The notes under the pieces are model-generated. The model did no database searches. It worked only from the letters and a program-made list of their open reading frames with translations, and was not told the DNA's origin. Positions 34,694 through 58,101 of a stretch of DNA of 64,000 bases are shown here, piece by piece. This DNA is from Lepidodermella squamata. Taxonomy: Eukaryota > Animalia > Gastrotricha. How positions within the stretch are numbered: position 1 is the stretch's first letter; each line of letters opens with the position of its first letter. Location: contig JBLDXI010000003.1 of the NCBI GenBank assembly GCA_047495785.1, positions 3,224,001 to 3,288,000 on the forward strand, in the 5' to 3' direction. The position numbers and the translations under genes were made by a program.

Positions 34694-34837
34694 GCTCATC
34701 TTCGAGAACATTCCCCAAGAACATTCAAAAATTCAAATTTATCCAGCTATATTTGATGGAAAATGCAAATTATTTTGTCTATCAAGACTTTCCTAATTCA
34801 TCTTCATTTTAGAATATTTTGTTCTGATTTATCTAAG

Positions 34838-35981: not shown

Positions 35982-36571
35982 TCTACTTAAAATGAACTTA
36001 ACTATCGAATCCCTGACTTTTCATTGATAGAGATTGAGATTTTTCTCGAAATGATTTATTTTTGGAAAATAAAGACTCAAGCGTTGTGAAATTCTGTTAT
36101 CTGATCTGTTAATTGAACCATTGCGTAGAACTGTTAGCTTATATCAGTGAAGTTCCAAAGTTTCACATTGGCAACAAGGTTGACTCCTTTGAAGATATCC
36201 AGGATGATCATCAAATAATCCCGCAAGGTAAAACATGTAAAGCGTTCGTTATTAATTGATCATACGAGTTGGTATCATCACTGAACTGCTGAAGGACTCG
36301 CCAATGATAGAAAATTAGAGTCTAATCTGAATATCTGACTCCAGGTTCAATGGGACTCAAAAACATTGCTGATTAGCGATAAGCCATATTTACAATTCTC
36401 AAAAAAATTACGAATGAATTAACAAATAATATGGCTCGAGAATTTTTTTCATGAATGGAATTTTTTTTAACTTGAAACTCGTAGTGAATGACTTTTCCAC
36501 GTAAACATTGAAATTATTTGTAACTCGATCTAACCAGCTTTCAAATCTAATAGGAAAATTTGTATTCATCC

Positions 36572-38053: not shown

Positions 38054-38705
38054 ACTAACGGCGGATACAACTGTTTGCTTTCACAATTTGAAGAAGGATA
38101 CATTTTATAAATTCGTAAATTCAGTTGGATGCTCAACAGATTCAGCCAGTTTTGAATGAATGTGGCAAGATTATTTTACGCAGATTCACTGAATCCAACA
38201 GTGATCCAACAGTTTCCAACAATCTCATATAGAAGTTCGTCTTAATCAACTCAATTTGCATTTCAGACCTCGGTAGGCAACGAGAAACGGATTACCTTTC
38301 GATCTTCAAAGACTCTTATGATGCAAAATTGTTAAAGTTGAAATAAGTTGAAAATTTTTTTTTATTTTTTTTTCACCGTGTGCCCATCAAGATTGTCTTG
38401 AGAAAAAATGAAATAATTCACGGATTCAAAACGGAAAGGAAAGTGGGGCAAAAATAAACCACAGACGAAAAACAACAAATGACAAGGGCAGATTCGAACC
38501 ACAATCACGCGATTTGTGTGAAGCTGACATGGAAAATAATAAAAATAAGCAAGTGGCACGCGTGACCAGTCGCCCTCATACGCAACAGGTATGCGGATAG
38601 CAGGCAAACAAGGCTTTAAAAGCTGGTCTCAAAATCGGAAATGTATCATTCCAATCCGTTGCCTCTTCTCTATTTCATCTCCTCACTGATCATTGAACTA
38701 TCAAC

Positions 38706-39740
38706 ATGCGTTTAACCCTCGTCGCAGCTGCTGTCGCTCTGTTCTGCATCGGTACAAGTTTACTTTGTAATGACTGGTTTCTTAATTAATTTTCGTCGTC
38801 CGTAGTTGCCGTTTCGGCGAATGATGCGTCCGCCTCTGTGAACAAGAAGGAAGCCTCCGCTTCGGCTGGCGTCGACAAGGCTCGTCATGGCGATCTGTAC
38901 TCTGGGAAACACGGTCGTGGATTCGGCTTCCATGGCCGCCGTCGTGGCAACTACGCTTCTGCCTCGGTTAACAAGAACTCTGCTTCCGCTTCAGCTGGCA
39001 ATGGCGGCCGTCGTGGTGGTCGCTTCTTCGGCCACAAGGGTCGTCGTGGTGGCAACTTCGCCTCGGCTTCCGTCAACAAGAACTCCGCCTCCGCCTCTGC
39101 AGGCTCCAACAAGGGCCGCAAGAACTTCGGCCGTCGCCATCACGCTGGTCGCTACTTCGGCCACGGTCGTCGTCGTGGAGGAAACTTCGCCTCTGCCTCG
39201 GTCAACAAGCGCTCTGCTTCAGCTGCTGCCGGTAACTTCCGTGGTCGCCGTGGCCATGGAAAATTCTTCGGCCGTCGTCACGGTGGTCGTCGAGGTGGCA
39301 ACTTTGCTTCCGCCTCCGTCAACAAGCGTTCTGCCTCTGCTGCTGCCGGTAACTTCCGTGGTCGTCGCGGCTACTTTGGTCGCCATCATGGTGGTCGCCG
39401 TGGTGGAAACTTTGCCTCGGCCTCAGTCAACAAGAACTCTGCCTCCGCCTCGGCTGGATCCTACGGCAAACGTCGTGGATTCAAGCATGGTCGCCGTTCT
39501 GTTTCCTTCTCTGGCCGCCGTCATGGCCGCCGCGGTCTGCATGGCCGTCGTCGCGGAGGAAACTTCGCCTCGGCTTCTGTTAACAAGCGCTCCGCCTCGG
39601 CTGCTGCTGGCAACTTCCGCGGCCGCCGTGGTCATCATGGCAAGTTCTTCGGCCGTCGTCACGGTGGTCGCCGTGGTGGTGACTTCGCCTCGGCTTCGGT
39701 TAACAAGAGTTCTGCATCTGCGTCAGCTGGTAACAACTAA
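38706..39740 (+). CDS. Secreted type A protein, copy 2 (326 aa, 8 SASVNK-SASA blocks)
   Basis: Exons 38706-38751 and 38806-39740. Signal-peptide-like MRLTLVAAAVALFCIVAVSA. Repeats of N(F/Y)ASASVNK(N/R)SASA(S/A)AG separated by G/R/H/F spacers. Confidence 0.9.
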
Positions 39741-39920
39741 AGCTGGCATCCGAGCTTGATTTACCCATATAGGACTAACATAGTATTGTGTATGGTGAAG
39801 AAATTATTTTTTTTTGCTTGGGATACTTACCTGTTCAAAATTGGAAGGATAATATTAGTGTCACGACTGTGATCCAAATATATCTCATTTTTTTCCCGAA
39901 TTAGAGTTAACCCTTATAAA

Positions 39921-41161
39921 ATGCGTGTCTACCTCGCTCTCGCTGTGATTATCCTGCTTGCCGCTACCGGTAATTTCCTGCCATCCTATCTTTTAAACAT
40001 GGTTGTTTTATTTTTGACATTTTCATTGTAGTCTCTTCCGGTGGTAAGGGCAAAGGTGCCAAGAAGGGTGGCAACAAAAAGGAAGCTTCGTTCTCTGCCT
40101 CGGTTGACCAACGCGACACCTACGACCGCAAGTCCGCCTCTGCTGAGCAGGAATCCGCTGCCGTCGACTACGCCTCGGCCGATGCTTCCCACAACAAGAA
40201 GACCAGCGACAAGCGCAAGCTGATCAAGACCCGATCGGCCAGCCGCGAACGCGCCTCGGCCAGCTACGAATCTGCCGGCAAGCGCGATTCCGCCTACGAC
40301 CAGAAGAAATCGAAGGCTGGCAGCAAGCGCCACGGCCGCGTTGTCCGCAAGAGCGACTCGGCTGCCTCCGCCAAGCACGACAACGCCTACGCCGACTCTG
40401 GCGCCGCCGCCGCTGCCCAGAAGCACAAGCGCAACAAGAAGCACGGCCGTGCCGACCACAAGCGCAAGGCTGCTTTCCAGAAGGACCAGGCCCGCGACAA
40501 GGCCGGCGAGGTGATCGAGTTCAAGAAGAAGACCTTCACCGACAAGGGCCACAACAAGGTCAACAAGTTCAGCTTCGAGTCCGGCTCGCAGGAGTTCGCC
40601 AAGGCCGACTCTGACGGCGCCGCCACCACTGCCAGCCGCAAGAAGACCGCCAAGAAGGCCCATGGCAAGAAGTCCCGCAAGGCCCACTCTGCCGACTACG
40701 CTTCCCGCGATTCGCAGGCCTCGGCCGCCGCTGCCTCGAAGAAGGCGAAGCGCAACAAGGCCCACCAACGCCGTGCCTCGGCATCCGTTGCCCGTGACTC
40801 GCGCAACGCCCGCGACTACAAGACCAGCAGCAAGAAGACCTCCGTCTCCGACTCTGCCCACGCCCGCAAGGCCTCGGCCAAGCACGACCGCAAACGCGCC
40901 TCCGCCTCGGCTGAGCGTGCCACCCACGATTTCGCTGCGTCTGTCTCTGGCAGCTACCAAGAACAGAAGAGCGCCAGCGCCAAGAAGGCCAGCCACAGCG
41001 CTGCTAAGGGCAAGAAGGCATCCAAGAAGGGTGGCAAGAAGGCTTCCAAGAAAGAAGGCAAAAAGGGTGGAAAGAAGACCGAAAAGAAGGGCGGCAAGAA
41101 GGGAGGCTACAACCACGGCTACAACAAGGCGTCTTCAGCCGGCAAGAGCTACACCTACTAA
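39921..41161 (+). CDS. Secreted type B protein, copy 2 (392 aa, Lys/Gly-rich C-tail)
   Basis: Exons 39921-39969 and 40032-41161. Signal-peptide-like MRVYLALAVIILLAATVSS. Core is colinear with copy 1. AATAAA at 41254. Confidence 0.9.
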
Positions 41162-41532
41162 GCGAATATAACCAAATTATTTTTGATTGCGATTTTGACG
41201 ATCTACAAACATATTTGTGATTTGTGATTGTGATTTCTCGATTAATTAAATGAAATAAATCAGGAGATTGGAACTGAGGATGCTTTTTATTCGGGTACAC
41301 TTAAAGAAAGGAAAAACCCTCATTTCTCGTTAAAAAATTATTTATGCTTGGAAAATGAACACCGGCTTTCATGAAATGAACATGAAGTTAACAAGGTTAT
41401 TAAAAGCTTCTTAAATGGCGATATTCTTGTTATCGACAGCGGATATTATGCGATCAGCATTTCAGATGCGTATGATAGATGGCAGAGGCGAAGCCCTCCT
41501 CAATTATTCCAATTAAGACCGGAAGCCATGGT

Positions 41533-41539
41533 ATAAAAG
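41533..41539 (+). promoter_or_regulatory. TATA box of the type C gene
   Basis: TATAAAA about 100 nt before ATG 41632. Conserved as TATATAA (62649-62655) in the diverged flank of copy 3, together with ATTATTCCAATTAAG. Confidence 0.7.
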
Positions 41540-41631
41540 CAGCGGGAATTCGGTTCCACATCATCAGCCATCTCTTGCTTCGATTTTCAAATTATTTATA
41601 ATTTCTCTTCATCTCATTATCCTATTCAACC

Positions 41632-42139
41632 ATGCGTGCTTTCCTCGCCATTGCTGCTATCGTCCTGCTCGGCCTTGGTAACACACTTTCTTCCTCACTT
41701 ATGCCCATAACCTGAAATTCCCTATTGCATTGTTTCAGCTTACTCTGAGGCCAAGGTGTGGAATGTTGAATCGAAAGAAATGCACCGCCACTACGAGAAG
41801 AAGGTGAGCGCCTCGGCGAGCCGCTCCTTCGAGAACAAGAAGGCTTTCCGCAAGGGACGTGCCTTCCCGATGAAGAAGCGCCACGGCAAGAAGATGAACA
41901 AGCGCCGCGGATCCTTCTCCAAGTCGGTCTCCAAGTCTGTTTCCTACTCGCGGTCCGCCTCGTTCTCCGGCAACCGCTGGGGCAAAAACAAGCGATTCGG
42001 TGGTCGCAAGTTCGGCAAGCACGGCAAGAACTTCGGCTACGGCCGCAAGGGCGGCAAGTTCGGCCACGGCAAGTTCGGCGGCCGCAAGGCCAACAAGGGC
42101 TCGTACTCCTTCAGCAAGTCCGTCAGCGTCTCCAACTAA
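41632..42139 (+). CDS. Secreted Lys/Ser/Gly/Phe-rich protein, type C, copy 1 (148 aa)
   Basis: Exons 41632-41677 and 41739-42139. Signal-peptide-like MRAFLAIAAIVLLGLAYSEA. Alternating S-x blocks (SFSKSVSKSVSYSRSASFS) and KFG repeats. AATAAA at 42195. Confidence 0.9.
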
Positions 42140-42576
42140 ATTATGATCACAAGAACTTTCCATCATTGATGAATCACGAGTAATTTTCATGCGAAATAAA
42201 AAATCATTTAAAAACTCCATTTGAGATTTTTGTCTATGATGAGGCCTGCGATGAATAACGGATTGGTGGTCGTACGCACTAACTTCAAATTCCTTAAGCC
42301 GAAAATTGAGGACGCCCTCAAATTTAACTCAAAAATAAAAGCAAACGATTCTATCTTTTTGAAAACTTGAAAAATCACAAGATTTGGATATTATCGAGAA
42401 GCTGTATTTTTTGTGCTATTCGCATACATTCATAGCTTATAGTAGGCAACTCGAGTCATAATAGATAAAAGATTCATTATTTTACAAACGTTAAACGCAA
42501 AGTTATGGCTATCAGACGCGTACAATTATGCCTAACCACAATCTTTTTCCAGCTATGCCATGTGGTTGTGGCGCAC

Positions 42577-43177
42577 CCCAGGCGAACACGCGTCATATGA
42601 AATTACGTGATAATATACGACGGAAATGTGACCGGCATGTTACATCATTAATCGAACGATTTCGTCGTATGGACATCACATCTCGCGGTTACTTGGTCGT
42701 CACATTTCAAACGCGGCGAAAATTATATCATATCGTGGTCACATCGCCGATGCGCCAAAAATTATATCACATCCCGGTTACATCCAAGTCACATCGCCGA
42801 AGATGTGATCGCGAAGTGATATAATTTTTGGCGCGTTCGAAATGTGACGACCGTACGACGGCTACATAATTCGACAAAAAATAGAAGAAACAAAGCTATT
42901 CGAGTAAATATGATATAATTTGTTAACATCACATCGCAATTTTTACCAATAATCTGATTATTTTTAGATTGTACATATGCAAATTAAACTGCTTTCTCTT
43001 TCTCCGCTTTAAAAAATAGATACCACACGATAGGACGAATATATGACGAACATGTGACGTTTTTCGCAATTATCATATAACTAGGCGGACATTCCTCAGT
43101 ATAACCGTCGCTCATGTTTTGATATGACGAAATTTCGGAATTTCACATGTCGGTCGTATGATCCGTGTTCGCCTGGG
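42577..43177. mobile_element. Non-autonomous TIR element (CCC...GGG ends, 2-bp TSD; CMC/EnSpm-like)
   Basis: TIR CCCAGGCGAACACG at 42577-42590 and its complement at 43164-43177. Flanked by AC on both sides. Many internal TCACAT/ATGTGA motifs. Confidence 0.75.
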
Positions 43178-43841
43178 ACGTGCTGTCAACAAAGATTCCA
43201 ACTCGAAACCCTTAGTTTTTTAATACCTGGAGGTTGAGATTTCTTTTCTGAAATTCCTGGAAAATCAGGGAAAAATCATTGAAGTTCGCTCCAAGTATCG
43301 ACATGTGGACCATGATGCGGGCTATCTAGGCCATTGAAAAAATGCTTCAATTTAAATTTAAATGACCGTGAAAATTATTTTTCTTTGTGATTGCGAAACC
43401 ATTTTTCCTCGATAACACCATTTGAAATGCCTTCAAAAATTTCGTAAAAATAATCAGCTTGTTCCTCGTGATTTCCTCCCTCCGTATCCATCAACGAAAA
43501 CCTTGGGAAAATCGAAACCGTCACGGAACCAGTAAAAAAACCAATCGACTATTTTGTTTACTTTTCCTGCAAGCGCTGATGAATCAGCTGACCATCTGGC
43601 GCCCATGGCGTAGCACCCTTTTTCTCGTGAGTAAGCAGTCTATCCTAAATTATGTCTATGGTGCGCGCGCTACCTTAATCCGCAAAGTGTAAACAAAACA
43701 TGCGATGCGCCACCTTCACCAGTGTTTTGTGGACAAAACGTGTAAATCGTAGCGCGAAACTTGAAGTCGCCGCCGAAAACCGTAAATTGTAATCCACACG
43801 CATAAAATCGCAGTTGATAATTGAAATAACGTAAACTTGTC

Positions 43842-44126
43842 ATGGATGAGCAATACGACCTTGACCCGGAGGACATTGTGTTGGAAGGAGATGTCGAGGC
43901 GGAAAATGTTGATGGCCGAGACCAAGACCACGACAACGAGAACCTTATGGGACCGTCCGAACAGCCGGCTAAAACAGTGACCAAGTAGACCTGGTTTCAC
44001 GTGCAAACATTCGACAGTTACGATCTGGTGCATGAGCATGCCAAGGCCATGGCAGCCGAACATGGCTTCAGTGACTGGAGCTACAGTAAGGTCACAGTCC
44101 TAAAAGATGGAACGACCAAATTGTGA
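43842..44126 (+). pseudogene. Degenerate Mutator-like (MULE/FAR1-type) transposase N-terminus
   Basis: ATG 43842, acidic leader, in-frame TAG at 43986, then WFHVQTFDSYDLVHEHAKAMAAEHGFS. By eye this resembles the F-x-S...Y/A...GF motif of MuDR/FAR1 DNA-binding domains. Confidence 0.4.
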
Positions 44127-44634
44127 CGAGTTGCCGATCTTCTTGATGTTGTCAGCGGCGGTTAGTGGATCACAAAGGCTCACAAAGGTATGTCATAAAC
44201 CCAACATAACGTCGGCGTTTGAGGGCTGGGAGTTGGACCCCGCCGAAGAATGAAACCAAATTTCTCATCTTGGTTCGCCTCTTCAAGTACTTTGCTGAAG
44301 GATCGCTGAAAAATATGGTTTGAATAACAGTATGAATGCATCAGGTTTCACATAAACAGCAGGAATCACCCAACTTATCTTTTCTTCTTTGTCGATAATT
44401 ATTATTGCGAAATTAATTGAAAAAATCGGCACCGCTACCTCGGCATAGGTCCGCAGTGCAACGATAGAGTCGTCGATACCCGGTAGACTCGGTTTTTCCA
44501 GGTGAATATCGACAACCAGTCAACTAACGGGTGTGACAACCCTTAACTAGCAAGTTAACTTAATGAAAACCATTCCAGTCCATGCATTTTAAGGTGGTCT
44601 TTCTTTCGATCACTTACTTATCGTTCAAAAGTTC

Positions 44635-44960
44635 AAAATAAGAGTTGGTGCGAAGTGCCTGAAAAATGGCAATGAGTAATTCGCTGACTTTCCGGCCGGA
44701 AACGACTGGATCTCAAACAAAACTGGATTATCGACCTCGGACAACGGCTATCAAATTCTCGACAAACTGTGTCGACGTTGCAGCAGTTCATGGTGGAAAC
44801 AAGCCCATCAACACTACCCGGTGTCGCTATGCGCTATGGTGATGCCGAGAAAGAAACCCTCGCTCATGTGTTAGGCGCTTGTAACCACAATAGCTTCCTC
44901 ATCAACAAACGGCATAACACTGTCCGCAGAATGATTGCTAACGCGTTCAGAAGTCTCCAG
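44635..44960 (+). mobile_element. Frameshifted fragment of an RLE-type non-LTR retrotransposon (R2/NeSL-like zinc knuckle region)
   Basis: Pieces in shifting frames: FPAGNDWISNKTGLSTS, TAIKFSTN...TTRCR and KETLAHVLGACNHNSFLINKRHNTVRRMIA (CCHC knuckle followed by the RHN motif). Confidence 0.7.
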
Positions 44961-47137
44961 GCGCGTGAAGCGGGATGCGGTACGTTTGCTACGCCGTTTG
45001 GGTAGCGACCCCCCACTTGGACTACCTGAGGGTACTGTCCTCACCAAGAGCGACAAGAGTAATATTCTCATCTTGGAAGATGCGAAACGTTATGCCGCCG
45101 TCGGGGAAAATTTCCTCGGTGACGCTACAATGTGGCATCAGCGCGGCGACGACGGGGCTGTGGAATTCCAGGCGTCCTTAGATGCCCTCCACTCCCGTCT
45201 CCTGCTGGCGAGCAGGTGGTACCAGACCAATCACCCTTTGCTGGTCCACATTGGCTTGCCGGCGCGGGAAAAGTGTATGTACTTCAACTACAAGACCCAC
45301 AAACCCCTGGACGATAAGGGTTTTCCAAAGGTTAGGCCCATCACTGATGCATACAACACGTATACATCAGCGCTCGACCGGTCTTTAAGCTTGCTGATCG
45401 GGGCACCAACTTCCGTCCAGGGGAATCCCAGCTTAAGGCGCTCATCGTGAACAGGAAACCGATATGGGATAACCTGGAGACTACGGCGAAGGATACCCTC
45501 CAGGTTATCCAGCGTGTGCGAGCTCTGCTTCTTCGCAACGCGGAGAGGCCTGTATTCATCATGTCAGCCAGTGTTTTCCTTAAGCGGTTTAACAGTTTAA
45601 AATTTAAACACCAAACGGAGCAGTTTTAAACACCAAAACGGCTTGCTACAGGCCCTGAAACGCATCCATACACTAATTGAGAAGCCCAAGTTTAATAGGC
45701 TGTGTCCCTTGGATAGTTTTAGCTCTTGGGGAACATAAATACTCAAAAATTTTGCTCGCTTCGCTCGCCCTAATTCTCAATTTTTCGATACGATTAGGAA
45801 ACGATCTAGGATTCTCCAAATCTGTGGTCTCTCTGACAAATCAAATGATCTGCCCTTAATTTTTATAATTCGAGATCACTACAGTTACGCAGATACTACT
45901 GGTATCGAAGTTATCGAAGCGCGAAAAATGGGAAATTCTGCTCTAAATGCTCGATTTTTAGACCGTTTCTATCTCAAAATCAGGATAAATATCGTCAGCT
46001 AATGCTCGCTTCGCTCGCGGTGGTAAATTTAGCCATATTTAGTGATATGAGCGCGCGAAAATTGGGCGGGTAGTCAAAATGGAGCTTCCCATCAAATTCA
46101 TCTTTTAGCGTTTACTATATAGCTCTAGCGATAATAGTGGCTTGGGCCAAAGGCGCCCACCCCTCACCCCACTAAAAATGTTGACAAATGTACACATTAT
46201 TGATTTAAACACCAAAAATTTTGGTTTAAACACCAATCAGGGTCTTAAGGAAAACACTGTGTCAGCGGACATCAATGACATGTATAACCAGGTGCCTACA
46301 GATGAGGCGGTCCAGTCCGTCCGCTGGTACCTCACTGAGTTCCACCGGGTCCCCGTGGAGGCCGTGGACCCGACATGTCAGCTCACTGAGCTAGTGCTAC
46401 GGCACAACACGGTTTCTTTTAATGGCAGATATTACCAGCAGGTGAGAGGCCTTGCGATGGGCGGTAACATCTCCCCTGTGGCCATTTGTTGGTTATACTA
46501 CAAGGAGAGGTGGCTATCCCTTGGCTGTGGGTCAATGTACACTACGCGCTTCCTGGATGACATTCTGTCTATCTCACTCATGAGGGAAGGTCTCATGCAC
46601 TACGTAGCGTCTTACGAGGCTAGTCACCCGAACATTAAGGTCTCTGCGGAAATCGCAGTGGACAAGCAACACTTCCTGGATATCTCCATCCATAGGCATG
46701 GTGATAAGCTCACTACTGGGCTATACGTTAAGCCAACGGACAACCTAGCGTTGCTCCACGGCAGCTCTAACCACCCTCCTCAGGTATTCCGTGGCATAAT
46801 GCGCGGACAGATTCTGCGCTTTCTCCGCATCTGCCAGACACATCAGGCATTCATGCATGCATGCATGCAGCTCGCCATCAGGCTGCATGCACGGGGCTAC
46901 TCTTGGCATGCCTTCGTGACTGCTCTCCAGAGTACAGCTCGGGACAGGCAGGGTCTAAACTGGCCCTATAAGTTACCCAAGCGACCTAACAATGTGCATC
47001 GCACCACCAACAAGCTCACATACCACCGAGCCCTGCTACCAATCCTACGGGTGATCAGGGCGAGGGTACCAGTGGCTCTCATGTTGGACCAGTCGATTGG
47101 CAGACGCTATCGACGTTCAAGATTCATTCGTAAATGA
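44960..47137 (+). mobile_element. Penelope-like element reverse transcriptase (5'-truncated, one frameshift, split by an insertion)
   Basis: Motifs KSDKSN, YKTHK...RPIT, AKDT, SADINDMY, QQVRGLAMG, RFLDD, FLD and YVKPTD...LHGSSNHP...GQILRFLRIC. Frameshift lies near 45390-45447. No GIY-YIG domain before stop 47137. Confidence 0.9.
45569..46259. mobile_element. 691-bp non-autonomous TIR element inserted in the RT, 7-bp TSD
   Basis: TIR CAGTGTTTTCCTTAAG (45569-45584 / 46244-46259). TSD TGTCAGC (45562-45568 / 46260-46266). Subterminal TTTAAACACCA x4 and GCTCGCTTCGCTCGC x2. Confidence 0.92.
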
Positions 47138-47143
47138 TCTATT

Positions 47144-47785
47144 TTGCCTTGCAGGTGGCGCCGTTGGCGACCCCCAAAAGAAGAACCAGCGTACACGTTT
47201 CACAGCGCCTTTTCACAGTGTACTAACTGTGTACTCGGTGTTGTTGTGTTGTCTGTCAATAAACATACGCTGATGTGCAAATTGTCTCTTTTCACAGCTG
47301 GGCAAAGTCTCATGTTCCCCATTGCTGGGCGTAAACCCCAATGTCCCACGCCCCCGGAAGTAGTGGAACTCCCGCCTTCCGTCCAGTCTAGCCAGCTCGC
47401 GTCACGCCCACGTCCTGTGTCCCCTGTGACGGGGGGTGACCGGGCGATGGCGCGCCATCACTTCTGGTTGAAAATTTGGGAGCAGAAGAAGGCGACACCG
47501 TTCTATCAGGCGATCTCTGAGGAACTCCGCTGCGGTTTTCGCAGATGCGACTACCGCTGTTGTAATATCCACGGCATGTACCTACATTTTATTAACGCTC
47601 ACCCACGGGCGTGCTGCATCTTCCGGAACTTCTGGAAGCGCATCTGTGCGGAGTGGTGGAAGAAGGACACCACCCACCACCCTGACAATGTACGGTGGCC
47701 ACACTGCTTTTGTGAGCAGACTGCGAGCTATGAGGCCCTTTACGCACGGCGTCAGGCGTCCTCAACGAGGCGTGGGATCCCTTAA
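47144..47785 (+). CDS. Small ORF with one C2H2 zinc finger downstream of the RT (probably element-encoded)
   Basis: CGFRRC-x12-HFINAH fits C-x4-C-x12-H-x4-H. Acceptor-like sites at 47154 and 47297. True start is uncertain. Confidence 0.45.
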   Translation: MPCRWRRWRPPKEEPAYTFHSAFSQCTNCVLGVVVLSVNKHTLMCKLSLFTAGQSLMFPIAGRKPQCPTPPEVVELPPSVQSSQLASRPRPVSPVTGGDRAMARHHFWLKIWEQKKATPFYQAISEELRCGFRRCDYRCCNIHGMYLHFINAHPRACCIFRNFWKRICAEWWKKDTTHHPDNVRWPHCFCEQTASYEALYARRQASSTRRGIP

Positions 47786-48251
47786 ACTTTAGCGCCCTGA
47801 CATCTGCTAAAAGGACGTTACGGATGGAGTCCGCGCCCTAGGTGAGCCTCCGGGCCTGAGGGCAGGATCCCATAAGCAGGCAATGCCCGCTTGGCTGGTA
47901 TCAGCCGCCAGGTACGCATCCTGGCTTCAACTCTCACTTGGGCTAATGCCCTATGTTAGAGCGTGGCGGTGTGCGCCAGTTGCGCGCACTGCACGTGCGT
48001 GCCAACTCGTTGGTACGCCATATCCGTACGGCTTTTCTTGACTGCATTAAGTTTGCAGTTGGTTTGTGGGTTTGATTGGACTTGTGAGCTAATGGCTCAC
48101 TTGAGGGTACCACAGTGTGGCCCGCTCCGCAGACCCAGTGTCCTTAACAAAAAAAACGGACCTTTGCACTGGAACCTTGACGTGGTGGTACCGCTTGACC
48201 AGCTAAAGATCCAAGGCCTCACTGCCAGGGAAATCCTGAATGTGCTATAGG

Positions 48252-51009
48252 CAGAGGTGGAATTGGGGCGGTTTGGGTTGGTGTACATATATGGGGTGCG
48301 GTGTGGGTCATGGTTTGGTGCGGGTTGGAATGGGTTGGGTTGCGGTTAGCCCATATGGGTTGCGGGTTATTTAACCCACATTATCTATTTTTGATATTAA
48401 AAGAGCTGTCATGTTTTAAAACATCGGCAAATACTCTGCTAAACATAGCGAAGCCATTTACGTTTCCCTATCAATTCCAATAATTTGAAAGTTACACATA
48501 AATCGACCAACAAAGCGCAATTACATTTTGTTTGCTATTGAAATTCATTCATTCGCTTGAACTCATGTTTTTGCTTCGGCGGATTGTTTTCTGTGATACA
48601 TTATTCAACGACAAATGCTGTGCCTGAATCGCTAACCGGCATTGAAGCGGTCTAGGCAGCAGCGAATAAGCCAAAACAGTCGAAAATAGTGAAATATTGA
48701 ATAGATCTGAGTTTCGCCAACATTTGACGGCGGGTGAATCTCATTTAGTTTTTTTCGACGTAGAATCCCATTTTGCTAAATTTTCTGCTAAGTTCTGATT
48801 ACACCTGCCATGTATGGCGGCATTTGGTGTTTGAAATTCGACCCATGCGATTTTATACACACCTCTTTTGTATCAAGTCGAGCATAGCTTACCATCCGCC
48901 AATATTTTTATTTTGAAAATGCCGTTCTGATTTCAACCCAAATTTCATGAAATTTTGGAGAATAACAGATGGAATGATGGATAATCATTTGGTAATAAAT
49001 TCATCCGGAACTGACGCTTTACGGAATCGAAAATATGATTATTGATTATCCAATTTGATGTTATGTGACGAATGGCCCCTGCCCCGTTGACTAGACCTGC
49101 GTCTCATGGGATGAGCAAGATATACCAGTATTACTTGCCACTACAATTCAGCGGATAGCCTAGCTTAGGTAGTCCATTTTCCAGGATCACCTGAGGAGCT
49201 TTATTAGAAATACGGTGTGTTTAATTGTTCGGTTCGGAGTTTTAACCAAGTACCACAAGTACTATTGCTCCAAGGGAATCACCAGTGAGCTCAAAACGGT
49301 ACTTATATACTGGTACATATCTCGATCCGCGATAAAAATGCTATCAAAACTTTTATTTATGAATCTATCAGGGATTCAGCTTCATTTTTTATTATTAATA
49401 TGGCTAAATTGTTTCAAGATTTTTTGTAAATTTCAAAGGTAATTCTTCGAATTTGAATGCCGTATTTTCTGAACCCCCACCCCCTCTCGTTTAGTGCCCT
49501 GCCTCGTTTAAAAGCCTAGGTATATCTGATTTTTAATATGTGGAGCCCTACCTTGAATAGTAACCTGGGCGCATAGTACGCGAAGATTAAACCCTCTTCG
49601 CTGCCCTAGCGCGCATGCTAACACGTGAAAAAAGCCCCTTAAGCTCCTAGAGGTCCAGTCGACACTCGAGATGCGGATGTTGCGCTGTTACCTGACCGCA
49701 TGAGATGAGAGGCTGGAATAAATCGATTAAATCTTCATTACTCGCCGCGCCGAAGGTGCTATTGGCGCCTCCTGTTTCTATTTCCGGGTTGTATAGCCTA
49801 GTTTTTGTTGGTTTTCAAGGCTTCAATTTTGCATAACCTTGGGTTGGTTCAGCTTAAAATAGCTAAACATCTTTAGGTTCTGATAAATTATAATCTTTTC
49901 TCAGATATCAGACTAAAATCACGCATGAAAAACTATTAGGGCGCCGATATTTATAAACCTCTAACTTCAAACTCAAAACATATTTGTAGCTGAAATCGTC
50001 GTTGGTTCGGCTAAAAGCCCTATCTCTGTAAAACCGGAGGGTCGAATGGCGCCGGCTAGATTAGAATGAATTCATGAATACCTAGCCATAAGTAAGATTC
50101 CTCTCATAGATTTGGCGAAAACTGGACATCTTCGCTCATAGATCAATAAACTCTTCTCACTAAAATGAAATCCGAAATGTGCCGAACTTCGTAAACTGGG
50201 GATATCAACTATCAGTCTCTATACTGTGGAGATCATCCTCTAAACTTCAAAACTAGTTCGATCCCGTTAGAATTATTTTCCTGGCAATGCCGAGAGTGTT
50301 TAAGCAATGCTATGCCTCGCACACGTTTAAAAAGCTAGCTAAACAGGGGGGTGGCGGAGAATTAACTTCTTCACAACGGAGCTCGGTATTAAATTCCAAG
50401 GGGATATTTAAAATTTTTCTACGATAGTTTTTAGTTGAAAATTCTTATAAGCATTCTTTTGCTCAATCAAAAATTGAAATTTGGCCCTACCGCAGGCAAA
50501 TTTAGGATACAAATTAAAAAATTAAAAGCGCAAATCCTGAGAAATCATGATGCACTGTTGTAGTAATCAGCGGGCATTGTTCGGCTGTTTTGTCAATTGC
50601 TGAATTCGCACATGGAGCGACAGTAGCTTGATAGTAGCAATAAATTAATATCAGCGATAAAGCATTTTGAAACTACTGCTAATTATGAAGGATCGAGTAT
50701 TGTTCCCTCGCATTGCGCAATAACCTCAGTAGTGTGCACTCTTCGCTGGAAAACTCATTCGATCGATGACATTATACTCATTTGATTCCATACTATCAAT
50801 TCAAGCTCATGTAACGCAAAATATTATTGGGCTCCGATCATTTGGCAATGTTTTCTGCCAGAAATATACAAGTACGGTGATGTGGGTTAAATAACCCGCA
50901 ACCCATATGGGCTAACCGCAACCCAACCCATTCCAACCCGCACCAAACCATGACCCACACCGCACCCCATATATGTACACCAACCCAAACCGCCCCAATT
51001 CCACCTCTG
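48252..51009. mobile_element. 2,758-bp non-autonomous hAT-like DNA transposon
   Basis: 130-bp TIRs starting CAGAGGTGGAATT (48252-48381 / 50880-51009), with no mismatch seen. 8-bp TSD GCTATAGG (48244-48251 / 51010-51017). No internal transposase ORF. Confidence 0.92.
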
Positions 51010-51865
51010 GCTATAGGTATCTTGTTGGTTGCCTAATGCCAGTGCCGTCGTCAGGCTGCCTTCAGCGTAGCCGCGACAATAAGGACATTCAAACACTCTC
51101 TGCCGACAACTGCTATTATTGTTATTTCCTGCCCAAGTGGCTGTCGGCCATGTCTTGGCCACACACATGGATGAGATCTTAGCAGTAAGCAATGCGAACT
51201 GTTCCACAGCTTGGCGGCAACCCGCTAGGATGTGATTTTATGCGTGTGGATTACAATTTACGGTTTTCGGCGGCGACTTCAAGTTTCGCGCTACGATTTA
51301 CACGTTTTGTCCACAAAACACTGGTGAAGGTGGCGCATCGCATGTTTTGTTTACACTTTGCGGATTAAGGTAGCGCGCGCACCATAGACATAATTTAGGA
51401 TAGACTGCTTACTCACGAGAAAAAGGGTGCTACGCCATGGGCGCCAGATGGTCAGCTGATTCATCAGCGCTTGCAGGAAAAGTAAACAAAATAGTCGATT
51501 GGTTTTTTTACTGGTTCCGTGACGGTTTCGATTTTCCCAAGGTTTTCGTTGATGGATACGGAGGGAGGAAATCACGAGGAACAAGCTGATTATTTTTACG
51601 AAATTTTTGAAGGCATTTCAAATGGTGTTATCGAGGAAAAATGGTTTCGCAATCACAAAGAAAAATAATTTTCACGGTCATTTAAATTTAAATTGAAGCA
51701 TTTTTTCAATGGCCTAGATAGCCCGCATCATGGTCCACATGTCGATACTTGGAGCGAACTTCAATGATTTTTCCCTGATTTTCCAGGAATTTCAGAAAAG
51801 AAATCTCAACCTCCAGGTATTAAAAAACTAAGGGTTTCGAGTTGGAATCTTTGTTGACAGCACGT

Positions 51866-52466
51866 CCCAGGCGAACACGGATCATACGACCGACATGTGA
51901 AATTCCGAAATTTCGTCATATCAAAACATGAGCGACGGTTATACTGAGGAATGTCCGCCTAGTTATATGATAATTGCGAAAAACGTCACATGTTCGTCAT
52001 ATATTCGTCCTATCGTGTGGTATCTATTTTTTAAAGCGGAGAAAGAGAAAGCAGTTTAATTTGCATATGTACAATCTAAAAATAATCAGATTATTGGTAA
52101 AAATTGCGATGTGATGTTAACAAATTATATCATATTTACTCGAATAGCTTTGTTTCTTCTATTTTTTGTCGAATTATGTAGCCGTCGTACGGTCGTCACA
52201 TTTCGAACGCGCCAAAAATTATATCACTTCGCGATCACATCTTCGGCGATGTGACTTGGATGTAACCGGGATGTGATATAATTTTTGGCGCATCGGCGAT
52301 GTGACCACGATATGATATAATTTTCGCCGCGTTTGAAATGTGACGACCAAGTAACCGCGAGATGTGATGTCCATACGACGAAATCGTTCGATTAATGATG
52401 TAACATGCCGGTCACATTTCCGTCGTATATTATCACGTAATTTCATATGACGCGTGTTCGCCTGGG
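51866..52466. mobile_element. Mirror copy of the CCC...GGG TIR element
   Basis: CCCAGGCGAACACG...CGTGTTCGCCTGGG at the position mirroring 42577-43177. Confidence 0.75.
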
Positions 52467-52903
52467 GTGCGCCACAACCACATGGCATAGCTGGAAAAAG
52501 ATTGTGGTTAGGCATAATTGTACGCGTCTGATAGCCATAACTTTGCGTTTAACGTTTGTAAAATAATGAATCTTTTATCTATTATGACTCGAGTTGCCTA
52601 CTATAAGCTATGAATGTATGCGAATAGCACAAAAAATACAGCTTCTCGATAATATCCAAATCTTGGGATTTTTCAAGTTTTCAAAAAGATAGAATCGTTT
52701 GCTTTTATTTTTGAGTTAAATTTGAGGGCGTCCTCAATTTTCGGCTTAAGGAATTTGAAGTTAGTGCGTACGACCACCAATCCGTTATTCATCGCAGGCC
52801 TCATCATAGACAAAAATCTCAAATGGAGTTTTTAAATGATTTTTTATTTCGCATGAAAATTACTCGTGATTCATCAATGATGGAAAGTTCTTGTGATCAT
52901 AAT

Positions 52904-53411
52904 TTAGTTGGAGACGCTGACGGACTTGCTGAAGGAGTACGAGCCCTTGTTGGCCTTGCGGCCGCCGAACTTGCCGTGGCCGAACTTGCCGCCCTTGCGG
53001 CCGTAGCCGAAGTTCTTGCCGTGCTTGCCGAACTTGCGACCACCGAATCGCTTGTTTTTGCCCCAGCGGTTGCCGGAGAACGAGGCGGACCGCGAGTAGG
53101 AAACAGACTTGGAGACCGACTTGGAGAAGGATCCGCGGCGCTTGTTCATCTTCTTGCCGTGGCGCTTCTTCATCGGGAAGGCACGTCCCTTGCGGAAAGC
53201 CTTCTTGTTCTCGAAGGAGCGGCTCGCCGAGGCGCTCACCTTCTTCTCGTAGTGGCGGTGCATTTCTTTCGATTCAACATTCCACACCTTGGCCTCAGAG
53301 TAAGCTGAAACAATGCAATAGGGAATTTCAGGTTATGGGCATAAGTGAGGAAGAAAGTGTGTTACCAAGGCCGAGCAGGACGATAGCAGCAATGGCGAGG
53401 AAAGCACGCAT
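52904..53411 (-). CDS. Secreted type C protein, copy 2
   Basis: Mirror of 41632-42139 with identical translation. Confidence 0.9.
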
Positions 53412-53881
53412 GGTTGAATAGGATAATGAGATGAAGAGAAATTATAAATAATTTGAAAATCGAAGCAAGAGATGGCTGATGATGTGGAACCGAATTCCCG
53501 CTGCTTTTATACCATGGCTTCCGGTCTTAATTGGAATAATTGAGGAGGGCTTCGCCTCTGCCATCTATCATACGCATCTGAAATGCTGATCGCATAATAT
53601 CCGCTGTCGATAACAAGAATATCGCCATTTAAGAAGCTTTTAATAACCTTGTTAACTTCATGTTCATTTCATGAAAGCCGGTGTTCATTTTCCAAGCATA
53701 AATAATTTTTTAACGAGAAATGAGGGTTTTTCCTTTCTTTAAGTGTACCCGAATAAAAAGCATCCTCAGTTCCAATCTCCTGATTTATTTCATTTAATTA
53801 ATCGAGAAATCACAATCACAAATCACAAATATGTTTGTAGATCGTCAAAATCGCAATCAAAAATAATTTGGTTATATTCGC

Positions 53882-55122
53882 TTAGTAGGTGTAGCTCTTG
53901 CCGGCTGAAGACGCCTTGTTGTAGCCGTGGTTGTAGCCTCCCTTCTTGCCGCCCTTCTTTTCGGTCTTCTTTCCACCCTTTTTGCCTTCTTTCTTGGAAG
54001 CCTTCTTGCCACCCTTCTTGGATGCCTTCTTGCCCTTAGCAGCGCTGTGGCTGGCCTTCTTGGCGCTGGCGCTCTTCTGTTCTTGGTAGCTGCCAGAGAC
54101 AGACGCAGCGAAATCGTGGGTGGCACGCTCAGCCGAGGCGGAGGCGCGTTTGCGGTCGTGCTTGGCCGAGGCCTTGCGGGCGTGGGCAGAGTCGGAGACG
54201 GAGGTCTTCTTGCTGCTGGTCTTGTAGTCGCGGGCGTTGCGCGAGTCACGGGCAACGGATGCCGAGGCACGGCGTTGGTGGGCCTTGTTGCGCTTCGCCT
54301 TCTTCGAGGCAGCGGCGGCCGAGGCCTGCGAATCGCGGGAAGCGTAGTCGGCAGAGTGGGCCTTGCGGGACTTCTTGCCATGGGCCTTCTTGGCGGTCTT
54401 CTTGCGGCTGGCAGTGGTGGCGGCGCCGTCAGAGTCGGCCTTGGCGAACTCCTGCGAGCCGGACTCGAAGCTGAACTTGTTGACCTTGTTGTGGCCCTTG
54501 TCGGTGAAGGTCTTCTTCTTGAACTCGATCACCTCGCCGGCCTTGTCGCGGGCCTGGTCCTTCTGGAAAGCAGCCTTGCGCTTGTGGTCGGCACGGCCGT
54601 GCTTCTTGTTGCGCTTGTGCTTCTGGGCAGCGGCGGCGGCGCCAGAGTCGGCGTAGGCGTTGTCGTGCTTGGCGGAGGCAGCCGAGTCGCTCTTGCGGAC
54701 AACGCGGCCGTGGCGCTTGCTGCCAGCCTTCGATTTCTTCTGGTCGTAGGCGGAATCGCGCTTGCCGGCAGATTCGTAGCTGGCCGAGGCGCGTTCGCGG
54801 CTGGCCGATCGGGTCTTGATCAGCTTGCGCTTGTCGCTGGTCTTCTTGTTGTGGGAAGCATCGGCCGAGGCGTAGTCGACGGCAGCGGATTCCTGCTCAG
54901 CAGAGGCGGACTTGCGGTCGTAGGTGTCGCGTTGGTCAACCGAGGCAGAGAACGAAGCTTCCTTTTTGTTGCCACCCTTCTTGGCACCTTTGCCCTTACC
55001 ACCGGAAGAGACTACAATGAAAATGTCAAAAATAAAACAACCATGTTTAAAAGATAGGATGGCAGGAAATTACCGGTAGCGGCAAGCAGGATAATCACAG
55101 CGAGAGCGAGGTAGACACGCAT
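53882..55122 (-). CDS. Secreted type B protein, copy 3
   Basis: Mirror of 39921-41161 with identical translation. Confidence 0.9.
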
Positions 55123-55302
55123 TTTATAAGGGTTAACTCTAATTCGGGAAAAAAATGAGATATATTTGGATCACAGTCGTGACACTAATATTATCCTTCC
55201 AATTTTGAACAGGTAAGTATCCCAAGCAAAAAAAAATAATTTCTTCACCATACACAATACTATGTTAGTCCTATATGGGTAAATCAAGCTCGGATGCCAG
55301 CT

Positions 55303-56337
55303 TTAGTTGTTACCAGCTGACGCAGATGCAGAACTCTTGTTAACCGAAGCCGAGGCGAAGTCACCACCACGGCGACCACCGTGACGACGGCCGAAGAACT
55401 TGCCATGATGACCACGGCGGCCGCGGAAGTTGCCAGCAGCAGCCGAGGCGGAGCGCTTGTTAACAGAAGCCGAGGCGAAGTTTCCTCCGCGACGACGGCC
55501 ATGCAGACCGCGGCGGCCATGACGGCGGCCAGAGAAGGAAACAGAACGGCGACCATGCTTGAATCCACGACGTTTGCCGTAGGATCCAGCCGAGGCGGAG
55601 GCAGAGTTCTTGTTGACTGAGGCCGAGGCAAAGTTTCCACCACGGCGACCACCATGATGGCGACCAAAGTAGCCGCGACGACCACGGAAGTTACCGGCAG
55701 CAGCAGAGGCAGAACGCTTGTTGACGGAGGCGGAAGCAAAGTTGCCACCTCGACGACCACCGTGACGACGGCCGAAGAATTTTCCATGGCCACGGCGACC
55801 ACGGAAGTTACCGGCAGCAGCTGAAGCAGAGCGCTTGTTGACCGAGGCAGAGGCGAAGTTTCCTCCACGACGACGACCGTGGCCGAAGTAGCGACCAGCG
55901 TGATGGCGACGGCCGAAGTTCTTGCGGCCCTTGTTGGAGCCTGCAGAGGCGGAGGCGGAGTTCTTGTTGACGGAAGCCGAGGCGAAGTTGCCACCACGAC
56001 GACCCTTGTGGCCGAAGAAGCGACCACCACGACGGCCGCCATTGCCAGCTGAAGCGGAAGCAGAGTTCTTGTTAACCGAGGCAGAAGCGTAGTTGCCACG
56101 ACGGCGGCCATGGAAGCCGAATCCACGACCGTGTTTCCCAGAGTACAGATCGCCATGACGAGCCTTGTCGACGCCAGCCGAAGCGGAGGCTTCCTTCTTG
56201 TTCACAGAGGCGGACGCATCATTCGCCGAAACGGCAACTACGGACGACGAAAATTAATTAAGAAACCAGTCATTACAAAGTAAACTTGTACCGATGCAGA
56301 ACAGAGCGACAGCAGCTGCGACGAGGGTTAAACGCAT
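55303..56337 (-). CDS. Secreted type A protein, copy 3
   Basis: Mirror of 38706-39740 with identical translation. Confidence 0.9.
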
Positions 56338-58101
56338 GTTGATAGTTCAATGATCAGTGAGGAGATGAAATAGAGAAGAGGCAACGGATTGGAATGATAC
56401 ATTTCCGATTTTGAGACCAGCTTTTAAAGCCTTGTTTGCCTGCTATCCGCATACCTGTTGCGTATGAGGGCGACTGGTCACGCGTGCCACTTGCTTATTT
56501 TTATTATTTTCCATGTCAGCTTCACACAAATCGCGTGATTGTGGTTCGAATCTGCCCTTGTCATTTGTTGTTTTTCGTCTGTGGTTTATTTTTGCCCCAC
56601 TTTCCTTTCCGTTTTGAATCCGTGAATTATTTCATTTTTTCTCAAGACAATCTTGATGGGCACGCGGTGAAAAAAAAATAAAAATTTTTTTTCAACTTAT
56701 TTCAACTTTAACAATTTTGCATCATAAGAGTATTTGTAGTTCGAATGGTAATGCCCTTTCGTGGCATAGCCGAGGCCTGAAATGCAAAGTGAGAACATAA
56801 AAGACAAACTAACTACCACGACCTTTCTGACGACATGAATGATATTCCGTTAGGTGGTTTATTTCCTATCAATATTTAACTTCAGCCAAGCCTTTGTGAT
56901 CGACCTGTTAGACCGAGTTCACAGACAGGCAACTATTCAAGATATAGTTGATGTCGCTAATGTTGGCGATGTAGATAATGAAGCCGAAAAAATCGGACAC
57001 CGCTAGTCAAAATTAGCATCAAAAGTGTACCAATTGCTGACGTGTGCGCGTATCGTGATTTCAGGAAGCTTTTGAATGGCTGCCATGAACCCGAGAAGCC
57101 ACGCATTATCTGCGTGGAACGAGCGCAACCCTGAGATACTGAGAAAAATTACCAAGGCTTGAAAACCCTTGACCAAGTTTGAGAATTGAATTTCAAATGC
57201 TGACGGTTGACAATATCGTTAAATCTCGGCTCTTATATAGATGAAATATTCCGTGTATATTTGTTGCGTCGCATTTTATGGAGTTTCGCGTAAACTCACT
57301 CAGGAATTTATTGCGAAAACATTCGTTAGTTAGCCTTGATAATATTTCGACACCTACCTTTAATCAGAAATCCAACCTCACATTCAATTGCAGACCTTGC
57401 CCTCGACCTAACTTTTGATGGGTCCTTGGCGTTGTCAATGGTACTTGGGCCTTCATGAAAAGTTACATTTGAACATAACAATCGAAATTCCTTGATACGC
57501 TGGCTGATACGGTATCACCCCCGGAGATTCCGTACTACGCGGAATTCAATGAAACGCCACGAAATTTGCTTCATCAGTTGGATCCAATACGTATGTGAAT
57601 GTTATTCATATTGCCAGGCAACTCAGGTTCCCACGAAAGCTGACCAATATTCAAAGCTGTTCCACCTTCTCATCAACAATTAAAAGGGGGTGTGTAATAT
57701 GAAACAAGTGTCATCGATTGATTTATAAATAGGAACAATTCACTATGGGCTCTTATCTTGTCGAGCGTCTCATATGGAGGTAAAAGATGAAAGATTCACA
57801 TTGATATTTTGCGTCCCATGGCTATTCTTATTTTCCATGTTATTGAAAATTCAAAGTCGCTGAATACATTTTTACTGAGAATCGCATTTGTTCAACCGAA
57901 AATTATCCAATGTTAATAATATTATCTTATTTTTGAGAAAACAGTGCCAAAATGTAGGGGATCCATTGATTATTACAAACAATCAGCCGAATTCATACTC
58001 TTGCGTGAAAACCTGCTGTTTTAAATTTGATTGCCGGAATGCTCATTTTTTACTAGGGCCTGAATTCATGGTACTGAAAAGACTCACCAAGCCCCTGATT
58101 G

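Follow-up and report, generated by a model that had tools for sequence, protein, structure and literature searches.

Gene-bearing inverted repeats with more than 99.9% arm identity, arranged around a non-duplicated spacer and carrying an amplified gene family, are described from sex chromosomes (P1-P8 of the human Y and the palindromes of the primate and mouse X), where arm-to-arm gene conversion maintains them (PMC3723533, PMC8327919, PMC8600007). In other inverted duplications, one of the two junctions is known to fall within inverted repeats, and microhomology or insertions mark the second (PMC11293582, PMC3907307). In template-switch rearrangements of the DUP-TRP/INV-DUP type, the first junction lies in a pre-existing inverted repeat pair, producing a chimeric repeat, and the second shows microhomology and/or inserted sequence (PMC11293582, PMC4352052). 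Fold-back inverted duplications with a disomic spacer have a single-copy, kb-scale spacer between the direct and the inverted copy; short inverted microhomology, insertions, or hybrid repeats of 82-95% identity occur where these copies are joined (PMC3907307). Retroelements can take part as well: L1 is reported to have bridged sister chromatids head-to-head in a fold-back inversion, and both this bridging and nuclease-independent insertion at breaks have the hallmarks met below (PMC7058536, PMC1920257). Finally, nuclease-less Penelope-like elements, among them Athena and Coprina, attach to exposed DNA ends (PMC8557442).

Here we describe an 18.6-kb palindrome of the gastrotrich Lepidodermella squamata, located in a 64,000-nucleotide stretch of DNA (the window). 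It is a mirror-image duplication carrying three secreted-protein genes (A, B and C; Table 1), and a repeat search reports it as one inverted pair (38291-43812 / 51231-56752). In a base-by-base ungapped comparison, in which paired arm coordinates sum to 95043, the core arms align from end to end with zero gaps. They differ by exactly two substitutions (T vs C at 38379/56664 and A vs C at 42377/52666) and a sole tract variant of 4 nt (38355-38358, A4T9 vs A8T5), a core divergence of about 0.04%. The original prediction had claimed a near-perfect match with two substitutions and one tract variant, extending over introns, intergenic DNA and a MITE, and in all of this it proved exact. The introns of the three genes measure 54-62 nt, and the arms contain MITE-like repeats besides intergenic DNA. 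As in the sex-chromosome palindromes, arms of more than 99.9% identity surround a non-duplicated spacer and contain members of an amplified gene family. Unlike in those palindromes, the arms are just 5.5 kb long, and the spacer (7,424 bp) is almost entirely transposon-derived.

Table 1. Features of the palindrome, with positions in the window.
Feature	Position	Strand	Remarks
Left outer fringe	38234..38311	.	~77% identical to 56732-56810; ~400 bp upstream of gene A
Left arm (native copy)	38312..43809	+	5,498 bp; same orientation as neighbouring family units
Gene A	38706..39740	+	Signal-peptide exon 38706-38751, intron 38752-38805, repetitive Gly/Arg/Ser/Ala-rich exon
Gene B	39921..41161	+	Signal-peptide exon 39921-39969, intron 39970-40031, basic Lys/Ser/Ala-rich exon
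Gene C	41632..42139	+	Signal-peptide exon 41632-41677, intron 41678-41738, basic Gly/Lys-rich exon
Transposon-derived inner arm part	42530..43660	.	Repeat F (42530-42576 plus 43178-43660)
Repeat A	43661..44120	.	460 bp, intact; spans left arm/spacer boundary 43809/43810
Repeat B	44365-44639	.	
Repeat C	44641-44955	.	Cut at 44955; four other copies run on
Endonuclease-less Penelope-like retroelement	44953..51234	+	Pieces 44953-45568, 46260-48251, 51010-51234
MITE	45569..46259	.	691 bp, in retroelement; perfect 16-nt terminal inverted repeats, TGTCAGC target duplication
hAT-like DNA transposon	48252..51009	.	2,758 bp, in retroelement; ~150-nt terminal inverted repeats
Right arm (derived inverted copy)	51234..56731	-	Carries genes C', B', A'
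Gene C mirror copy	52904-53411	-	
Gene B mirror copy	53882-55122	-	
Gene A mirror copy	55303-56337	-	
Right outer fringe	56732..56810	.	Unique flank 56811-58100 adjoins

The arm represents one A-B-C unit of a large head-to-tail gene cluster, in which the neighbouring family units all lie on the plus strand. The right arm alone is inverted and is therefore the derived copy, showing that the left arm is the native one. The arm is found twice in the genome and nowhere else. For this reason the palindrome, which works like the DUP-TRP/INV-DUP class, is strictly no member of it: it has a single inverted extra copy and no triplicated segment.

The lower-identity homology that had been noted just outside the arms is real. 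With the core left out of the search, 38234-38310 aligns to 56810-56733 at 77% identity over 79 columns (E = 8e-10); in register without gaps there are 48 matches out of 78 (p ~8e-9), and the longest perfect block is 12 nt. The fringe thus measured is 77 bp long, although the old homology possibly extends up to ~145 bp. A dispersed repeat, the alternative that the original prediction had itself raised, and a transposon end are both ruled out: a genome-wide search of the 121-Mb assembly places the fringe at two sites only, and both flanks are unique. Break-associated hypermutation (deaminase clusters or error-prone synthesis) was rejected as well, since the differences are mostly transversions together with a complex 17-nt patch and a divergence of ~20% would far exceed any polymerase error rate. 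A small RNA or tRNA gene is not indicated either (zero Rfam or tRNA matches in 36000-59000). Sensitive blastn and tblastx searches of flanks and spacer found no longer old palindrome past the fringe, and neither spacer nor flank holds a decayed remnant of an older right arm.

Two of the three core differences fall in the first 68 bp of the arm (transition zone 38312-38379; p = 4.6e-4). Consequently, the outer junction passes from the diverged fringe through a mosaic zone into the identical core, as in the chimeric repeat at the first junction of DUP-TRP/INV-DUP rearrangements, even though the repeat pair is here ~77 bp at 77% identity against kb-scale low-copy repeats in that class. These observations support the fringe as genuine older inverted homology, present at the palindrome locus alone. 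Given the gradient of differences at the outer edge and this locus-specific old fringe, they also support an outer boundary that is a recombination endpoint within pre-existing diverged homology and not a clean de novo breakpoint.

At the inner boundary the change is abrupt, with 100% identity up to 43809/51234 (the last 1.4 kb of the arms are identical) and random sequence beyond. Within this inner part, repeat F is split by a 600-bp insert with a MITE-like inverted repeat (42695-42858). Repeat A (97% identical to the C36 copy, 90% to the C30 copy) retains in the right arm its first ~149 bp only (51382 down to 51235), which shows that the inner end of that arm is a broken end inside repeat A. 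The inner join accordingly involves two different broken repeats, namely repeat C at 44955 and the inverted repeat A at 51235, and the broken end of repeat A is shown to be joined to the second one in repeat C by a young retroelement copy. An ordinary transposon insertion site is ruled out for the right inner junction, as both partners are truncated. The junction is an illegitimate join cutting two young transposable elements and is demonstrably recent, a further difference from the sex-chromosome palindromes.

The retroelement in this join is truncated at both ends. Its 5' end starts at an internal position of the element, with 3 nt (GTC) common to the join; at its 3' end the last 17 nt of the terminal repeat are absent, and all five other copies of this repeat extend past the junction (four by ~17 nt, one by ~10 nt). 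Microhomology at the 3' junction amounts to 1-4 nt (G, or TGTG/TGCG). There is no target-site duplication, and target sequence has been lost. Truncation of both ends, lack of a target-site duplication, loss of flanking target and junction microhomology are likewise seen in endonuclease-independent L1 insertion; unlike in the L1 cases, the element is a nuclease-less Penelope-like one, and we see a germline-fixed state in an invertebrate-type genome instead of a somatic tumour event. Filler and microhomologies together also resemble the second junction of the template-switch class, with the difference that the filler is here a retroelement. Over 747 bp the copy has 1 private substitution, whereas three others have 11-25; it is very young, and its age is compatible with that of the arms.

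Penelope-like reverse transcriptases are relatives of telomerase, and the nuclease-less elements are normally confined to chromosome ends. In the 1,040-aa open reading frame of the retroelement, a weak RVT_1 is the sole Pfam match at E <= 1, and no nuclease domain was found at that threshold. Its reverse transcriptase has 12 relatives (E from 2e-69 to 1e-10) which have PF28514 and PF26215 in common, most of them also PF00078; their architecture is RVT_1 + DUF8422 + HTH_animal, with GIY-YIG in some (PF01541 in three of the 12, not including the closest relative). Rotifera and Basidiomycota are the sources of the nearest Atlas clusters, and searches of PDB and NCBIfam were uninformative. The C4 copy has 294-bp direct terminal repeats of the pseudo-LTR kind, and most copies of the family are short 3' fragments, pointing to frequent 5' truncation. 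In the Penelope-like reverse transcriptase without GIY-YIG, the terminal direct repeats, the frequent 5' truncation and the attachment to free DNA ends, the element is like Athena and Coprina (PMC8557442). It is unlike them in that the copy is internal and not at a chromosome end, and that neither a hammerhead motif (no Rfam match at E <= 1 in four copies) nor telomeric repeats were detected in it.

Two later insertions interrupt the retroelement. The MITE site is empty in the C4 copy. In the hAT-like transposon, which is flanked by a target duplication of 8 bp (GCTATAGG), there are 32 private substitutions over 2,055 bp (1.56%). Both lie within a retroelement of 3.5 kb, whereas neither arm has a transposon insertion that is absent from the other.

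From the diverged fringe the original prediction had argued for an older inverted duplication whose core is kept homogeneous by conversion. Under this explanation an old palindrome would be homogenised by recurrent arm-to-arm exchange, the retroelement patch would be the later repair of a central break, and the fringe would escape since conversion requires homology on both sides. It accommodates a fringe that is ~23% diverged vs ~0.04% in the core, with a gradient at the edge, and the arm identity, which sex-chromosome palindromes reach in that way (PMC3723533, PMC8327919). The uneven distribution of transposon insertions between retroelement and arms speaks for it too, as does the 1.56% of the hAT-like insert. 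As a clock for an old spacer, however, this insert is unreliable: its host retroelement is young and cut-and-paste elements carry old mutations along, and its substitution load is discounted on these grounds. Moreover, the retroelement that sets the present inner boundary is very young, the arms are identical right up to that boundary, no old arm sequence is left elsewhere, and more events would be needed than in a single repair. At the outer edge, identity rises from 77% to ~100% within ~70-145 bp and the next 4 kb hold zero differences; so abrupt a step points to the boundary of one event rather than a statistical edge effect. We therefore consider recurrent conversion unlikely. Of the original claim, the older locus-specific inverted homology and the edge gradient stand; long-term repeated homogenisation is not supported, in view of the young illegitimate inner junction and the missing old-arm remnant. 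Nothing shows that the palindrome has long been maintained in the manner of sex chromosomes.

Nor need a one-off recent duplication leave a sharp breakpoint, as the original prediction had assumed. Old homology at the start or the end of one repair produces this pattern too, and long-term gene conversion is therefore not proven by near-identical arms and a diverged fringe alone. For the core, a single recent round of copying suffices; recurrent conversion is not needed.

Our preferred explanation, to which we give about an even chance and which we regard as the most likely, is a very young inverted duplication in the head-to-tail cluster made in one episode of double-strand-break repair. The DNA would first have broken to the right of 44955. 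On the right-hand side of this break, the 3' strand would have annealed to the old inverted homology that lies upstream of gene A; its extension rightwards over 5.5 kb of the left arm would have given the inverted copy. This strand may then have disengaged inside repeat A, whereupon the retroelement's reverse transcriptase would have extended the same 3' end on retroelement RNA, primed by the 1-4 nt of microhomology; such a step fits the orientation of the retroelement. The cDNA end would have been joined to the left-hand break end through the 3-nt microhomology, and the MITE and the hAT-like transposon would have inserted afterwards. In a close variant, a slightly older, still young palindrome with a short centre might have suffered a central break and unequal loss, with the retroelement patch added subsequently.

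This explanation rests on the measured arms and fringe, the latter at two places only; on the inversion of the right arm alone, with repeat A complete at the left arm but truncated in the right one; on the cut in repeat C, the GTC at the join and the lack of a target duplication; on an open reading frame without nuclease domain and with Penelope-like relatives; and on the youth of the retroelement, compatible with arm age, together with the absence of a decayed older right arm. Several points count against it. It requires a pre-existing inverted homology whose own origin it leaves unexplained, and sequences that are 77% identical, and whose longest perfect block is 12 nt, would pair inefficiently. 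If the hAT-like transposon acquired its substitutions at this site, the age of the spacer would far exceed that of the arm divergence, and conversion would be favoured. In addition, no hammerhead motif was found in the element and five other retroelement copies are not at inverted duplications; as these five do not lie between inverted repeats, a patching role was rejected as a general feature of the family. We infer the order of events from one assembly.

The microhomology at the 3' junction also lends itself to a different order, in which the retroelement came first (in an earlier break repair) and fold-back followed a second break, 17 nt before its 3' end. TGTG at 51231-51234 would pair with CGCA at 43809-43812, the folded end would copy the left arm leftwards, and the strand would be captured at the right flank via the old fringe. 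The 4 nt of inverted microhomology (with one G-T wobble) agree with this, and known duplications of this kind have kb-scale spacers (median 3.4 kb) and 2-8 bp of inverted microhomology (PMC3907307). The single-copy spacer between direct and inverted copies is likewise in common with them, but the Lepidodermella event is interstitial, without terminal deletion or dicentric outcome, and its older homology is at the outer edge and not at the spacer edge. Two independent breaks at nearly the same site would be required; moreover, it would remain unexplained why the junction falls within the natural range of 3'-end variation of the retroelement family and why the retroelement's orientation matches priming from the right arm. 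We regard this order as quite improbable.

The same junctions bear on whether the palindrome could be an assembly or library artefact, for instance from chimeric fold-back reads, with one arm only in the organism. Both sides of each arm have unique junctions, the three arm differences are substitutions and not homopolymer-length errors, and the inner join shows truncated repeats, microhomology and a retroelement patch, which are signatures of a biological process. For the 7.4-kb spacer and the homeologous outer junction to be artificial, two independent chimeras with consensus support would be required. An artefact is thus highly improbable, a small risk only, and the palindrome as predicted is confirmed in the assembled sequence.

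Returning to repair in a single episode, we tentatively propose, as a possibility about which we are rather doubtful, that a nuclease-less Penelope-like reverse transcriptase sealed an internal break by extending the 3' end of the break-induced inverted copy, completing a heritable palindrome that doubles genes. If this is true and general, such elements would help to create spacer-containing palindromes. The insertion is the second internal, break-associated one of a nuclease-less Penelope-like element in this genome, and it supports the idea that internal breaks can be healed by telomerase-related elements. As a record of the birth of a gene-bearing palindrome the locus is unusually legible: both junctions can be read to the base, and the old inverted homology, the copying of 5.5 kb, the retroelement patch and the two transposon insertions can be put in order.

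Through the event, three members of an uncharacterised protein family, secreted, basic and low in complexity, are now present twice; the products of genes A, B and C are all secreted low-complexity proteins. Gene A belongs to no Pfam family in a scan of single-exon open reading frames, exact look-ups of three open reading frames of the window gave no matches, and a 376-aa minus-strand frame, for which the protein search was also without matches, is the antisense of gene B, so that its outcome has no bearing on the A/B/C family. About 30 paralogs of gene B are found on contig C3, and a TATA-like box lies near 41530 for gene C. The same window also includes a spectraplakin gene.

A repeat search of the 64-kb window, C3:3224001-3288000, yields a single large inverted repeat. 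In an ungapped comparison (paired coordinates sum to 95043) its core measures 5,498 bp (38312-43809 against 51234-56731), with three differences between the arms: T/C at 38379, A/C at 42377 and a 4-nt variant of an A/T tract at 38355-38358. A diverged fringe of 77 bp adjoins the outer edge of the core (38234-38310 against 56810-56733, 77% identity); its match is significant even without the core (E = 8e-10), and in register 48 of 78 positions agree. Sequence comparison found no homology past this fringe on either outer flank. The change from 77% to about 100% identity is step-like, and the inner (arm/spacer) edge is abrupt. The original prediction had described near-identical arms with few differences and a diverged outer fringe, and every element of this is borne out by the base-level comparison. 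It had also proposed establishing the genomic copy number of the fringe: genome-wide searches, covering the 121-Mb, 151-contig eukaryotic assembly, place it at two positions only, both at this locus, and the outer flanks on both sides are unique sequence. Old homology is genuinely present at the outer edge and belongs to this locus alone. With about 23% divergence, the fringe is far older than all other parts of the structure.

Two of the three core differences fall in the first 68 bp beside the fringe (p = 4.6e-4), which is what a recombination endpoint (a heteroduplex mosaic) in diverged homology would leave. The A/T tract itself (38351-38375 against 56668-56692) reads A4T9 in one arm and A8T5 in the other, is of equal length in both and is nearly its own reverse complement; a strand-switch mutation within such a quasi-palindrome would be expected to produce this variant, as would the survival of old diverged sequence.

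Each arm carries three two-exon genes (A, B and C), consisting of a signal-peptide exon, an intron of 54-62 nt and a second exon that is basic and of low complexity, with abundant Gly, Arg, Lys, Ser and Ala. Since both arm substitutions are non-coding, the gene copies in the two arms are identical. Searches of single-exon ORFs against Pfam gave no family for A, B or C. A, B and C together make up a single unit of a family, of which the same contig has some 30 copies or more (C3, 2.47-3.61 Mb, 70-97% identity); paralogs are also seen on contigs C1, C9 and C12. Judged by sequence, this large, clustered family probably encodes secreted, strongly basic, low-complexity proteins with a common two-exon layout. 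Among the neighbouring units the right arm alone is inverted, and similarity to other units starts at 38450, which leaves the fringe outside the family unit. Compared with the next unit, identity is 96.7% in intergenic DNA, 90.6% in gene A and 96.8% in gene C; this mosaic pattern is a hint of conversion between units.

Features of the palindrome and related copies. Positions refer to the window unless a contig is named.
Feature	Position	Strand	Remarks
A-B-C unit, left arm	38706-42139	+	mirror copy 52904-56337
Neighbouring family unit	34157-35929	+	sequence search
Neighbouring family unit	62619-63325	+	sequence search
Neighbouring family unit	64313-70309 (window numbering, just past window end)	+	sequence search
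Repeat A	43661-44120		460 bp; 97% identical to C36 copy
Retroelement terminal repeat adjoining right arm	51010-51234	+	comparison with other copies
MITE	45569-46259		691 bp; perfect 16-nt terminal repeats, TGTCAGC duplication
hAT-like element	48252-51009		2,758 bp; 8-bp duplication GCTATAGG
C4 relative of the retroelement	C4:681300-688200 (stretch L009)		positions 835-6020 within stretch
Repeat F head-to-head pairs	C7:1820731-1821709, C24:2076010-2076989, C13:2065176-2066163		sequence search

Transposons gave rise to the innermost 1.3 kb of each arm and to nearly all of the 7,424-bp spacer. Repeat A runs unbroken across the left arm/spacer boundary, and the right arm has its first ~149 bp only. 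There the terminal repeat of a retroelement adjoins; the overlap at the join is a single G, or 4 nt if one mismatch is allowed. Five other copies carry this terminal repeat on beyond the point of junction, four of them for about 17 nt and the fifth for about 10 nt. At its 5' end (44953) the retroelement begins internally, and GTC links it to repeat C, a spacer repeat which is cut short here and continues in four other copies. No target-site duplication was found around the retroelement. Given the cut repeat C, the cut inverted repeat A and the truncation of both retroelement ends, the retroelement bridges two broken ends: one in repeat C on the native side, the other in the inverted copy of repeat A. 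The right arm is therefore the derived one, and illegitimate repair created the join at its inner end. An assembly artefact is argued against by the four unique junctions, by their biological signatures and by the substitutions between the arms. Repeat F (43178-43660 in the arm) occurs elsewhere as head-to-head pairs ~90 bp apart, a fold-back type element; the arm carries just one half of such a pair.

A near-full-length relative of the retroelement on C4 (5,186 bp) is bounded by direct terminal repeats of 294 bp and flanked by a 162-bp duplication, and its 1,040-aa ORF shows only a weak reverse transcriptase (RT) match and no nuclease domain in Pfam. Searching with the RT region gave 12 relatives (E from 2e-69 to 1e-10) with a common PF28514 + PF26215 architecture, most of them also carrying RVT_1. 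GIY-YIG, the nuclease of Penelope-like elements, is present in three of the 12 and absent from the closest. A motif search found no hammerhead motif in the retroelement. The nearest Atlas clusters are from rotifers and basidiomycetes, the groups in which the nuclease-less clades Athena and Coprina occur (PMC8557442). On these data the retroelement is classified as a putative nuclease-less Penelope-like element. The 3' ends of family copies vary, up to 17 nt apart (stretches L007, L008, L010, L027-L030), consistent with microhomology priming at varying positions near the RNA end.

Over 747 comparable bases in four retroelement copies, the window copy has one private substitution (against 11, 19 and 25), and it is the youngest of the four, with an age compatible with that of the arms. 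The MITE and the hAT-like element inserted after its arrival; two such insertions in a very young 3.5-kb copy suggest high recent DNA-transposon activity or a local hotspot. Over 2,055 bp the hAT-like copy shows 32 private substitutions; read literally, that count would date the spacer to long before the arm divergence and speak for conversion. Cut-and-paste elements bring earlier mutations along, and as the host retroelement is young, we rejected this copy as a clock for the spacer. Recurrent arm-to-arm conversion, as in sex-chromosome palindromes (PMC3723533, PMC8327919), is possible but unlikely: the inner boundary is young, the outer transition is step-like and a sequence search of spacer and flanks found no decayed older arm. 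Of the interpretation originally offered, older inverted homology with later arm-to-arm copying is supported, whereas nothing demonstrates sustained homogenisation or calls for it.

At the inner end, a break was closed by end joining with a retroelement patch. Because the retroelement lies in + sense and its 3' terminus abuts the right arm, priming of first-strand cDNA must have come from the bottom-strand 3' end of that arm, exactly the strand expected from left-arm copying after fringe pairing. The most economical reading is one break with a three-step repair: a break end would pair with the old inverted homology, 5.5 kb would be copied, and release within repeat A would be followed by reverse-transcriptase extension and end joining. 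Possible variants are a young but slightly older palindrome whose centre broke and was patched by the retroelement, or a retroelement present first, followed by a second break that folded back.

The retroelement junctions combine 3' truncation, lack of target duplication, flank loss and microhomology, the features by which L1 insertion at breaks is recognized as endonuclease-independent (PMC1920257). There is also a report of L1 linking sister chromatids head-to-head in a fold-back inversion (PMC7058536). The single-break repair resembles in logic rearrangements that join once within inverted repeats and once at microhomology or inserted sequence (PMC11293582, PMC4352052), though the locus has no triplication and is thus not a strict member of that class; fold-back duplications with kb-scale spacers are similar too (PMC3907307). 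Five other copies of the retroelement family sit away from inverted duplications, so the association may not be general.

Elsewhere in the window, a spectraplakin gene (dystonin/MACF/shot type; 2904-29455, +) has giant ORFs of 1,525 and 2,494 aa with plectin repeats, followed by spectrin-repeat exons. An ORF at 36560-37435 (+) has a weak STELLO glycosyltransferase match, and an intronless 802-aa ORF (59483-61891, +) carries an ANF_receptor ligand-binding domain, with paralogs on C3, C58 and C33.
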